Under the pieces are notes generated by a model. The model worked only from the letters and a program-made list of their open reading frames with translations. It did not search any database and was not told where the DNA came from. A stretch of DNA of 64,000 nt from Salpingoeca rosetta (lineage: Eukaryota > Protista > Choanoflagellata). The position numbers and the translations under genes are program-made. Shown here one piece after another: positions 41,078 through 48,653 of the stretch; within the stretch, counting starts at the first letter, position 1, and the number at the start of each line of letters is the position of its first letter. The stretch spans positions 2,165,638 through 2,229,637 of the forward strand of contig JAWQFM010000007.1 of assembly GCA_033442325.1 (NCBI GenBank), in the 5' to 3' direction.

Positions 41078-42874
41078 ATGCTGCTGGCTGCTGTGGCTAC
41101 GGTCGCGGCACTGGCTGTGCTGCAATGCCAGCCCACAGAGGGCTTGAGCACTCGCACGGCGGAACGCGTCCGTCCAGTGGCCAACGCAACGACTTCCTTC
41201 TCTTCGGCGAGCGGCAATGCGTGGGACGCTGGCCGCCCGCCTTGCACGGACAACTTCCTCGCCATCACCGCCGACAACACCTACGTCGACATTGGAGACA
41301 ACCAGCGCGCAAGCGTGCTTGGGCTCGAGCTGGACGCCGGCGTGGTTGGCGGCGTGCTGATTGGCGTGGGCGGCGCGCTCGAAATCTCCGGACCCGAGGT
41401 GCTGGAGGAGCCGTCCCCGTGCCCGTCCTTGCGCGACGTCTCCAGCCGCATGATGACGCCAACCAGCGTGAGCGTGAGCTGGGAAACCAACTCCGTTGAC
41501 GCCTTCTTGTTCCTCACTGTCAACGACAACGTCTACGACATAACGGATACCAGCGCCATCGCTGTCGCCGACTCTGGCGACGAGGAGTCCCCGCCTCGCT
41601 ACCAGTGGATCTCCGAGGTGGAGTATTCCGAAAGCCAGTCCATCACCCTTCGGGCCGTCGCCAAAGACACCAACAACACGGCCTCTTGGTCCACTGTCCA
41701 CGATCCCGTGTCCAGGGCCGTCCAGTGGGTGCAAACCGGCGCAAACGGTGGCCCACTCTCCTGGGCCGATGCCGGCACTGAGCACTGGAAGCCACGGCAG
41801 CCGTGTGACTCCGATCACACGCTCCTGCGCTCGTCCGGAGGCTCATACGAGGTCACCCTCAACAGCGCAGTCGTCGTCAACAGCATTCAGTTTGATCTCT
41901 CCACTGGCATTGTTCTGGACACAAACGGCGAGCTCATTTTGGAGCTTGCTCCGCCAGGCAGCACCTGCGATGATGGCGACCCCTTTTTCACAACCACCAC
42001 CCCCACAACCACGACACCCACAGCGACCACAGCAACCACGACAACACCAGCGTCCAAAACTGGACCACCACCAACAGCGGCAACGACCACCACGACATCC
42101 ACGCTGCCGACAACGACCAACGGTGGAGACGGAGGGGGAACGACGACGACCGGGGGTGGGGGCACGCTTACCACCATCAGTGCAAACCCGACCACGATCA
42201 CGCTCCAAACAACCGCATCTGCGCCCAGCAGCAACACCACGGCGCCTGCCCTCGGGCCATCAACAACAGGAACAACGACCACGACAACAACCAAAGGCAG
42301 CGGCGCAGACAGCTCGACGAGCTCATCGTCGTCCACCATTCCCATCGCTGCCGGTGCAGGCGGTGGCGGGCTCGTCATCATTGTCATCATTGTCGTGCTT
42401 GTGGTGCGCGCGCGGAAACGCCACAAGCTGCGCCCCGCCCTCGCAGACGGCAAAAGCACTGCCAACATGTTTACCAACCCTGCGTACGACGGCGCATATG
42501 CGGGCGGCATGGAGCCAAACGCGCTGTACGCGGGAGGTGGCGGTGGTGACGGGCAGCATCCCGCCCACGAGCAGAACGTGCTCTACGAGTCGTCAAGCAG
42601 CGGATACACGCCCGCGTCGTCCGCGTCCACGCCTGGGCAGGTGCCCAACGTCCTGTACGAGGGCAGCGGTCAGCAGCAGGCAGCACCGCCGCTCGCAGAT
42701 TACGAGGCCGTTCCCGACGACGACGACGACGACGACGTGTACGCCTCTGCCGGCGACATCAATCAGCAACCGCTCCAGACAAGGGCCTCACGCCTGCGCT
42801 CCAACCCGTCATACAACGACACTGTCTTCACGGAGACACCACTTGGCTTTGGCCAGCCAGATGCACAGGCCTGA
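41078..42874 (+). CDS. Intronless 598-aa type I membrane protein with two amnionless-like N-terminal modules, a mucin stalk and an NPxY-rich tail
   Basis: Signal peptide. Modules GNAWDAGRPPCTDN and QWV...EHWKPRQPCDSD...IVLDTNGELIL flank an FN3/Ig-like segment. Thr-rich stalk. TM segment IPIAAGAGGGGLVIIVIIVVLVV-RARKR. Tail has FTNPAY, NALY, NVLYE twice and NPSY. The CDS is solid; the amnionless call is by eye. Confidence 0.85.
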   Translation: MLLAAVATVAALAVLQCQPTEGLSTRTAERVRPVANATTSFSSASGNAWDAGRPPCTDNFLAITADNTYVDIGDNQRASVLGLELDAGVVGGVLIGVGGALEISGPEVLEEPSPCPSLRDVSSRMMTPTSVSVSWETNSVDAFLFLTVNDNVYDITDTSAIAVADSGDEESPPRYQWISEVEYSESQSITLRAVAKDTNNTASWSTVHDPVSRAVQWVQTGANGGPLSWADAGTEHWKPRQPCDSDHTLLRSSGGSYEVTLNSAVVVNSIQFDLSTGIVLDTNGELILELAPPGSTCDDGDPFFTTTTPTTTTPTATTATTTTPASKTGPPPTAATTTTTSTLPTTTNGGDGGGTTTTGGGGTLTTISANPTTITLQTTASAPSSNTTAPALGPSTTGTTTTTTTKGSGADSSTSSSSSTIPIAAGAGGGGLVIIVIIVVLVVRARKRHKLRPALADGKSTANMFTNPAYDGAYAGGMEPNALYAGGGGGDGQHPAHEQNVLYESSSSGYTPASSASTPGQVPNVLYEGSGQQQAAPPLADYEAVPDDDDDDDVYASAGDINQQPLQTRASRLRSNPSYNDTVFTETPLGFGQPDAQA

Positions 42875-43477
42875 TGCTGATCTGGCAGCGCACCACCCCA
42901 ATGACTGTGCTGTTGCTGTTTGTTGTTGTTGGGGTTGTTGGTTGGATGTTTGGTTGGATGTTTGGTTGGATGTTTGGTTGGTGTTTGTGTGCTATGTTCG
43001 TACACACCGCTGTGTTCTTTCCTCTTTGTTGTTTTTACGTGCGGTGTTTGGTCACTGGAACTAATCCTGTTGTCACGGTTCCTTCTTCCTTATTGCTGTC
43101 TTTCCCCGCCTGTTCTCGCGGGCGTTGTGTTCTTTCCTTCCGTTTGGTGTCGTTAACCGAGCACACCCTGACCACTCTCGTTCTGTCTGTCTTCTTACTT
43201 CCCTGATCTGAGCTGAGTCTTGTTTTGTTGCGCACGTGTTACCGACACCTGCATGTGATTGCTGCTGCTAACTTGGCGCATGCAAACCCGCGTGCTTTGT
43301 GTTGTGCGCCTGTGGTTGATTGATTGACATGGCTGTTTACTTGCGGCTCGCGTGTGCGTTAAGAAGTGGCTGATATGTGCTGGGGGCTGCTTGTCCCCTA
43401 ATCATGTGGCAGAAACAACTGCACGCAAATACACAAAGACCAGTCGCTTTCGGTGAGACACAATGCAACGTAACGGC

Positions 43478-43592
43478 TGTTGTTGTTGGTGTTGTTGTTG
43501 TTGTTTAAGTTGTTGTTGGTGTTGTTGTTGTTTAAGTTGTTGTTGGTGTTGTTGTGTAAGTTGTTGTTTAAGTTGTTGTTGTTGTTGTTGAA
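43478..43592. repeat. Imperfect (TTG)n/TTTAAG minisatellite
   Basis: Repeated TTGTTGTTTAAGTTGTTGTTGGTG units between the two convergent genes. Confidence 0.8.
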
Positions 43593-47102: not shown

Positions 47103-47180
<78 letters not shown>

Positions 47181-48653
47181 GGGGAGCTGGAAGCACAGCG
47201 CACAGTAGCTGGTACCTAGATTGTTTCAGACGAAACTGCTATGTGAGACGATACCACGTGCGTAACCAACCTGTAACAGCCAGGCTCACGTCTCCAGCCT
47301 CCATGGACAGCATATCGTGTCGCGTATCAATGCCTTCCGTCTGCAGCACCAAGCAGGGCGCACAACACACGCACACACGCACACACGCACACACGCATAT
47401 ACAACAACAACAACATCATCATCATCACCATAAGCGGCGGCAGCAGCAGTACACACGTGTGCAACCCCCAACCATCCAAGAGCATCCTGCAACGATCTCG
47501 CAACAGCACACCATGTGGCGAACAAACCTGTGTTGACACGTGGGTGGAGAGGCTTTCGAGGGACAGGCGCACATCCACTTTCGTCGACGCCAAATCCTGA
47601 AGCCAGGGTCGGGCACACGTTGATTGGACAAGGGGATGAAGATCAGCAGCATGAACACAAAACGGCGCACACAAACATGCATGTGACAAGATTGAAAGGT
47701 CGCACAAACGCCTGGGTCATGTACCTGCAAAAGCACCGCCAAGAGAAACGCACAGCCACATGCACCAGCAAAATGCCCCACACACACACACATACACACA
47801 ACACACATACACACGTACACACATACACACACACACACACACGCACACACACACACACATACACACACACACTCATTCTCTCTACCAGACCTGTTTGGTG
47901 GCAAGGGCAGCGCTGACGGCGGAGCGGAGCGAGGTGGTCGTTTCTCCATCTGCGGCGACGCCGCGAATAGCGAGGTCGTGTGCGTCGTCAATGTGGAAGA
48001 CCAGGTTGCCGTCGATGACATCCAGGGACGGTTCGCGGATGCATCCCGTCTTGCCATCGCCTTTGTAGTTGACAGGGCACGGGCCACACTCGAAGGAGCC
48101 CGCAGTGTTTGTGCACACTGTGCGCGGGTCACACACGGGCGGCGAAATTTGCCCCACAGCACTCTGTGCGCACTCATTGACATCTGTGTTGTGTTGTGTG
48201 TGTGTGTGTGTTGTGTTATGTTGTGTGTGTGTATGTGCATGTGCGTGTGCGACACAAGAAGCAAAAAGAAAGAGGAAGGAAACACAAAACGCAGTGGCAA
48301 GGAGACAAGTATCCAGCCCATAGTAGTGTTTAGTGCTCACCCTGGCATGCGTTATTGACGAGGTGATACCCTGGGTCACAGATGAGGCCAGTGTCGGTGC
48401 TGCTCGCAGCAGTGGTTGTGGTGGAGGAGGATGCGCCCTCACTCACACCGGCTGACACCAGCAGCAGCAACACGAGGAACACACAGCACCAGGAACAGCG
48501 CATGTGAACTGCCACCAGGTTTGCCCGCCATGCTGCCGTTCTGACTGCTGGCGCCCTTGTTCTTGGTGCTGCTGCTGCTCCTGTTGCTCCTGCTGTGGTC
48601 GCGCCCACAACCAAACCACCACCAGCACCAAAGACGCGACGTCCTCCTTCCAT
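43619..48653 (-). CDS. Secreted protein: EGF-Ca, cubilin-N-like motif, coiled coil, three COLFI/fibrinogen N-subdomain-like repeats, Cys-rich C-terminal head (about 14 exons)
   Basis: Start at 48653 or 48503, hydrophobic signal CCVFLVLLLLVSAGVSEG. EGF: DVNEC...CTNTAGSFECGPCPVNYKGDGKTGC. Then EPSLDVIDGNLVFHIDDAHDLAIRG, and heptad-rich exons about 46571-47596. Repeats DPAESCQELKDLGYVTGVYYI, DATRDCSKLSKYFGLETGLHWI and FAAESCKAINAVYPDRATGTRWI. Stop at 43619. Exon phases are mutually consistent and no TM segment was found. Confidence 0.82.

Follow-up and report, generated by a model that had tools for sequence, protein, structure and literature searches.

The two convergent neighbouring genes analysed here, A (41078–42874, forward strand; PTSG_03878) and B (43619–48503, reverse strand), lie in a 64,000-nucleotide stretch of the choanoflagellate Salpingoeca rosetta genome (contig JAWQFM010000007.1, positions 2165638–2229637; hereafter the window), and 744 bp separate their stop codons. 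On balance, we favour the reading that A encodes a lineage-restricted receptor and that B, beside it, encodes an unrelated secreted oligomeric protein; none of the analyses showed a functional link between these convergent neighbours. An earlier note on this DNA had described them as a linked pair resembling amnionless (AMN) and cubilin, the components of the cubam receptor. To our knowledge, cubam has so far been described from animals alone, as a receptor for nutrient uptake. Were the pairing real, cubam-style attachment of secreted trimers to a membrane-protein anchor would have arisen before animals and would be in use in a bacterivorous unicellular relative of animals, and S. rosetta would allow a genetic test of it. 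A literature search returned nothing on amnionless or cubilin in choanoflagellates, nor on the locus tags. For two genes whose public annotation is poor, the locus yields corrected models, and it adds a choanoflagellate-specific module–Fn3–module receptor family as well as a second secreted family that combines an EGF domain, a stalk and a Cys-rich head.

According to the favoured reading, A would be a cell-surface receptor of S. rosetta and Barroeca monosierra, in whose ectodomain two disulfide-stapled W..GRxPC..D modules would flank an Fn3/Ig-like sandwich, and a mucin-like stalk would hold this ectodomain off the membrane. Because its cytoplasmic tail carries conserved N-x-L-Y and NP-type Tyr motifs, phosphotyrosine signalling and/or endocytosis are suggested as its output. 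The modules may be distantly related to the β-helix of amnionless. B would be secreted and would form an oligomer driven by its stalk, with a role in the matrix or in ligand binding.

Gene A and its receptor family

Gene A consists of a single uninterrupted open reading frame of 598 amino acids, whose product is a type I membrane protein with a signal peptide. The public model is 539 amino acids long, and the missing 59 amino acids of the Thr-rich stalk are spliced out of this uninterrupted frame. The two W...PC modules, the IVLDTNGELIL stretch and the tail motifs FTNPAY and NPSY, which the earlier note had reported, are all found at the positions given there (Table 1). The predicted Fn3/Ig-like sandwich between the modules, the Thr-rich stalk and the three N-x-L-Y motifs were absent from that description. 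Since the mature protein contains four cysteines only, at residues 56, 115, 243 and 297, each module probably holds one disulfide, with Cys56 pairing with Cys115 in module 1.

When 1.84 billion representative sequences were searched with the A ectodomain by full HMMER, only two homologs were returned, both from Barroeca monosierra (E=1.5e-13 and 3.8e-12) and both with the same domain plan as A. Word-based searches, one of them with a three-sequence profile, gave no further homologs, and no close paralog of A was found in S. rosetta. Invariant across the three orthologs are W-D-x-GRPPC-x-DN of module 1, CP-x-LR together with a Trp where the middle domain begins, and GP-x-SW...W-x-P-x-x-PC-x-x-D of module 2. 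The six modules of A and its two Barroeca homologs align to a single common pattern, indicating that modules 1 and 2 are repeats of each other.

The module profile detected at least five further modules in S. rosetta, each encoded in a first exon directly after a signal peptide (E=1e-4 to 0.012; Table 1). Fn3-like exons (PCP plus Fn3-like) come next in at least two of these genes, C1:583118 and C23, and the C23 gene continues with a second module, which gives the same module–Fn3–module plan as in A. In contrast to the one open frame of A, these genes are divided into many small exons, and a profile is needed to find them, as tblastn misses them. A belongs to a small receptor family that is specific to choanoflagellates and has a module–Fn3–module ectodomain.

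AlphaFold2 modelled the A ectodomain with a predicted local distance difference test (pLDDT) score of 31 from the single sequence and of 39 from a three-sequence alignment. The middle domain, with a pLDDT of ∼60, was the sole part that was modelled, and both modules were left unmodelled (pLDDT 25–35). The middle-domain model aligns with many Fn3/Ig-like domains at VIA-align Z-scores of 6.5–8.1, a range which the tool calls common. Residues 113–215 also gave a weak phmmer match to an Fn3 domain of PTPRD; the Pfam fn3 profile did not match the middle domain, and an ESM Atlas search with A returned no usable match.

A C-terminal RL-x-x-NP motif and three copies of N-x-L-Y-[AE]-[GS] are common to the cytoplasmic tails of A and of the Barroeca protein P0002. 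Of the two Barroeca homologs, only P0002 retains the C-terminal NP motif, and FTNPAY is absent from both. Because the N-x-L-Y and NP motifs are shared and FTNPAY is not, the tail of A, judged from its motifs, appears to resemble a phosphotyrosine scaffold no less than it resembles an endocytic tail of the amnionless type.

Gene B, its paralog and the linkage of the two genes

Our model of gene B has 15 exons and encodes 657 amino acids; it is in frame throughout, every exon border follows AG/GT, and the stop codon lies at 43619. The earlier note had placed B at 43619–48653. Its stop codon stands, but translation probably begins with the ATG at 48503, immediately ahead of the signal peptide, and the in-frame ATG at 48653 would lengthen the protein by 50 residues. 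The public model starts at 48183 and encodes 593 amino acids, without the signal-peptide exon 1 and with no EGF or other Pfam match recorded. Two observations support the model presented here: exon 2 matches EGF_CA in frame, and the paralog of B described below has the same exon series. Numerous (CA)n/(TG)n microsatellites were observed, one of them in almost every intron of B.

As the earlier note had proposed, B is a secreted protein with a calcium-binding EGF domain; apart from the N-terminal signal peptide it contains no hydrophobic stretch, and it has no transmembrane helix. Behind the EGF-Ca domain follow the EPSLDVIDGNLVF segment, a 176-residue helical stalk that lacks Pro and Cys, and a head rich in Cys. 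The segment occupies exactly the position reported before, directly ahead of the stalk; it begins three residues past the last Cys of the EGF-Ca domain and lies ∼80 residues away from the site of signal-peptide cleavage. Residues 107–282 contain neither Pro nor Cys and show a heptad-like periodicity, as judged by a crude heptad score only. This stalk probably mediates oligomerisation of B, whose probable role is in the matrix or in ligand binding.

The COLFI/fibrinogen-like heads that had been proposed for B were not recovered. Pfam gave no COLFI or Fibrinogen_C match to individual exons, none is recorded for the public model, and a six-frame COLFI search of the genome had no match at the B locus; exon 9 of the head had no match in the PDB. 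The Pfam and PDB searches made here covered the exons singly, and the sub-motif of the head is divided by introns. With exon 2, a word-based homolog search returned nothing and the ESM Atlas gave no usable match.

The S. rosetta genome contains one paralog of B, termed B2 (C5:1299050-1303900), in which the exon structure is kept at 27–87% identity per exon, and the segment is 73% identical. A profile of the B segment found only B and B2 in this genome; two further weak matches (C7:1325915 and C1:948972) were rejected as noise. B and B2 are a second secreted family of the EGF/stalk/Cys-rich-head type. COLFI-matching exons, two of them above the Pfam cut-off, are present elsewhere in the genome at C5:1281411-1284305 and C1:1200963-1205760, and the COLFI gene on C5 lies ∼15 kb from B2.

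Linkage of A-like to B-like genes was looked for at the B2 locus and at the loci with A-like modules. Within ∼10 kb of B2 there is no A-like gene and no W..PC..D motif, and within 15 kb of the six A-like module loci there is no B-like sequence and no motif of the GNLVF type. The idea of a linked pair as a rule in S. rosetta is thus not borne out: linkage is not a property of either the A-like or the B-like family in this species. Moreover, A and B are convergent and therefore do not share a promoter.

Possible relation to amnionless and cubilin

The Pfam Amnionless profile (PF14828, curated cut-off 30.4 bits) gave no match to A at E≤10, no match at the A locus in a six-frame search of the genome, and none to any individual module of A or of the Barroeca proteins. 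P0002 matches it over the transmembrane segment only. The sole match of the genome search, at C4:287518, was rejected as simple-repeat sequence beside an aldehyde dehydrogenase gene. A phmmer search of A against the PDB returned nothing apart from the weak Fn3 match. For B, a search of the PDB with exon 2 returned EGF proteins only, without the cubilin chains of 6GJE at E≤10, and a profile of the B and B2 segments likewise found no cubilin in the PDB at E≤10.

The lack of any significant match to amnionless or cubilin speaks for an alternative in which neither gene is related to the cubam components: W..PC..D and GNLVF would be short motifs that arose by chance or convergence, the modules of A a choanoflagellate-specific fold, and B an unrelated extracellular-matrix protein. 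In favour of this explanation, too, A differs from AMN by an Fn3-like domain between the modules and by the absence of a Cys-rich or SEA region, B differs from cubilin by an EGF domain ahead of the segment and by the absence of CUB domains, and the A family is limited to two related choanoflagellates. We regard it as a serious but rather unlikely alternative, as it has to account for the match to amnionless of the pooled and the 11-sequence module profiles, in which both AMN β-helix starts are aligned, and for that of the C23 module, as detailed in the following.

Several observations on both proteins point towards the animal counterparts and weigh against the reading that we favour. When the six modules were pooled into one profile, amnionless (6gje_A) ranked first of 177,635 PDB sequences (E=0.19), with an alignment in register with both AMN β-helix starts, NW-SQNRTPC and ERVPCRHDD; it was also the single PDB match of an 11-sequence module profile (E=1.5). 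Like its counterpart in AMN, the C23:319649 module stands right behind a signal peptide, and it matches positions 5–30, at the extreme N-terminal end, of Pfam Amnionless (E=0.003–0.009). In the case of B, the exact DGNLVF coding pattern is found at two sites only in the 55-Mb genome, the other one being C5:1647919-1647936 (forward strand). The earlier note had stated that its proposal would fall if both motifs were common in the genome; for the GNLVF-type motif this is not observed, as it is rare, and therefore a gene with an AMN motif beside a gene with a cubilin motif is not trivially expected by chance. The looser pattern G-N-[LF]-[VIM]-F has 32 sites in the genome versus 24 for the reversed control. 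Finally, B and cubilin have in common a short P-x6-GNLVF strand segment and then A-x-x-[IL]-x-[FI]-R, with a long helical stalk right behind them; in cubilin this strand contacts AMN. The human cubilin sequence Q-P-R-M-A-T-E-R-G-N-L-V-F aligns without gaps with E-P-S-L-D-V-I-D-G-N-L-V-F of B, which represents a lead rather than a test. Met44 and the strands at residues 42–49 of the published structure are consistent with this stretch of human cubilin (PMC6283879).

The profiles built from module 1 or module 2 alone had GST (E=0.041) and an Fn3 domain of NCAM (E=0.028) as top matches and did not return amnionless. Because these sub-profiles yield unrelated matches at better E-values, the amnionless match of the pooled profile is at noise level, and it is notable only since the target had been named beforehand. 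The chain that would lead from the A module family over C23 to amnionless is transitive and weak. Judging from their sequence, the modules of A are probably β-helix-like, and whether they are distantly related to the AMN β-helix is close to an even call, with our own estimate falling slightly on the negative side. A is not an amnionless orthologue. Of the amnionless-likeness claimed for A, the repeats and the first rank of 6gje_A with the pooled profile stand, and a Pfam match and a Cys-rich/SEA region are missing; among the five interpretive steps of the earlier note, this is the one that gains independent support, which is weak.

The two-part receptor envisaged there would work like cubam, in which AMN joins end-to-end with the N-terminus of a cubilin trimer: three B chains would trimerise via the GNLVF β segment and the coiled coil and dock end-on to an open-ended β-helix module of A, A would anchor B and internalise it via its NP/Tyr motifs, and the heads of B would bind prey or ligands. 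We consider such a receptor improbable. It would explain why motifs resembling both partners of a known complex occur in adjacent genes, and it agrees with the first rank of amnionless among the PDB matches of the pooled profile, the weak match of the paralogous C23 module to Pfam Amnionless, the rarity of the GNLVF motif in the genome and the finding that uncapped β-helix ends require a partner (PMC6283879). Against it, the amnionless match has an E-value of 0.19 versus 0.03–0.04 for unrelated proteins, Pfam Amnionless does not match A, and cubilin was not matched at E≤10. Moreover, cubilin strands 42–49 form a free mature N-terminus that faces AMN (PMC6283879), whereas the segment of B starts three residues past the last Cys of its EGF domain, so that three EGF domains would be located at the proposed docking face. 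With this position and without a profile match at E≤10, the description of B as cubilin-N-like gains no support. Neither B2 nor the six A-like loci retain the linkage, the convergent genes have no common promoter, and the architectures of A and B depart from those of AMN and cubilin at defining points. A complex model of one A ectodomain (residues 22–305) with three copies of B exon 2 (97 amino acids, including 15 stalk residues) gave ipSAE values of 0.02 and 0.06 compared to a mark of 0.34, and speaks neither for nor against docking.

Equally doubtful is an extended version, in which A and B would be one of several linked S. rosetta receptor–ligand pairs built on the cubam principle, with a B trimer head homologous to the cubilin N-terminus plugging into an amnionless-type β-helix; if true, β-helix-to-β-helix docking would predate animals, and choanoflagellates would have diversified the heads (Cys-rich and COLFI-like here) and the anchors (Fn3 insert and phosphotyrosine-type tail here).

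Feature coordinates and comparison with known systems

The features of both genes are listed in Table 1, together with the further module loci. Beyond the 5′ end of B, the next gene (49271–50419, reverse strand) is a 382-amino-acid open reading frame for a secreted protein with about seven repeats of 48 residues (GG[KR]W-GGVLA-NG-IYG-P...VL-IDP-NT-DTT), which appear propeller-like and have no Pfam match. A long (GAG/GAA)n run extends from 40226 to 40936.

Table 1. Features of genes A and B (window positions) and loci of further modules (contig:position) in S. rosetta.
Feature	Position	Strand	Basis or content
A module 1	41183..41413	+	residues 36-112; W-x-GRPPC-x-DN, then β-strand-like rungs
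A module 1 opening WDAGRPPCTD	41222-41251	+	sequence
A middle domain	41414..41722	+	residues 113-215; predicted Fn3/Ig-like β sandwich
A module 2	41741..41977	+	residues 222-300; GP-S-W...W-x-P-x-x-PC-x-x-D, IVLDTNGELIL, C297
A module 2 opening WKPRQPCDSD	41786-41815	+	sequence
IVLDTNGELIL of A module 2	41909-41941	+	sequence
A mucin-like stalk	41984..42337	+	Thr/Ser/Gly-rich, without Cys; sequence, Cys positions
A transmembrane helix	42338..42406	+	followed by basic stop-transfer stretch RARKRHK
A cytoplasmic tail	42407..42871	+	FTNPAY, three N-x-L-Y-[AE]-[GS], C-terminal RL-x-x-NP-x-x-N-x-x-x-F
A tail FTNPAY	42470-42487	+	sequence
A tail NPSY	42803-42814	+	sequence
B exons 1-8	48503-48341, 48183-47891, 47596-47528, 47340-47290, 47023-46845, 46676-46571, 46425-46323, 46094-46000	-	AG/GT borders
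B exons 9-15	45845-45700, 45460-45412, 45260-45148, 44838-44778, 44564-44439, 44289-44122, 43870-43619	-	frame closes
B calcium-binding EGF domain	48041..48181	-	Pfam EGF_CA (PF07645), E=3.5e-7, 30.8 bits versus cut-off 27
B segment EPSLDVIDGNLVFHIDDAHDLAIRG, proposed β segment ahead of helical stalk	47960..48034	-	sequence
B helical stalk	46571..47959	-	from the end of exon 2 through exon 6, residues ∼130-285; heptad-like pattern, Gly breaks
B Cys-rich C-terminal head	43619..46425	-	exons 7-15; three S-C-x-x-[LI]-...-G-x-[YHR]-[YW]-I sub-motifs
Further module loci	C26:967647-967784, C1:583118-583231, C30:695909-696001, C1:1395765-1395854, C23:319649-319744		module profile; W-N-S-T-D-A-W-S-V-GR-x-PC-T-C-E type

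For A, the closest known system to compare is amnionless (PDB 6GJE chain A). Both are type I membrane proteins with a single transmembrane helix, both have two N-terminal repeats that each open with W...R-x-PC and continue with short alternating hydrophobic strands, and both carry NP-x-[YF]-type motifs in the tail. A Cys at the end of each module (C115 and C297 in A) is presumably a feature of AMN as well. The AMN tail, behind its single transmembrane helix, is short and contains two F-x-N-P-x-F internalisation signals. A has one F-x-NP-x-Y only, which is not conserved in Barroeca, and its conserved tail motifs are instead of the N-x-L-Y-E-S type. The extracellular part of AMN consists of two N-terminal right-handed, three-faced β-helix domains and a Cys-rich region with an SEA domain (PMC6283879). 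In contrast, the two modules of A are separated by the Fn3/Ig-like domain, and a Thr/Ser/Gly-rich stalk takes the place of the Cys-rich and SEA region; from residue 297 to the transmembrane helix, A contains no Cys and no Pfam domain.

Cubilin's N-terminal region (residues 36–131, PDB 6GJE) and B both lack a membrane anchor, and EGF-Ca domains occur in both proteins. Their order differs: in B, the segment stands behind the EGF domain and not at the mature N-terminus, a furin site is absent, and the EGF domain comes ahead of the stalk, not after it. Unlike cubilin, B has no CUB domain, and no CUB match was obtained on any of its exons. In its overall plan, B resembles secreted coiled-coil oligomers that end in globular C-terminal heads, such as the angiopoietin/fibrinogen-related proteins, EMILIN/multimerin and proteins with the fibrillar collagen C-propeptide (COLFI). 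The sub-motif P-A-E-S-C-x-E-L-K...G-x-Y-Y-I...C-D of its head, which has no profile match, is similar to the start of COLFI and fibrinogen-related domains, and a signal peptide, a stalk and a Cys-rich C-terminal head are found in these proteins as in B.

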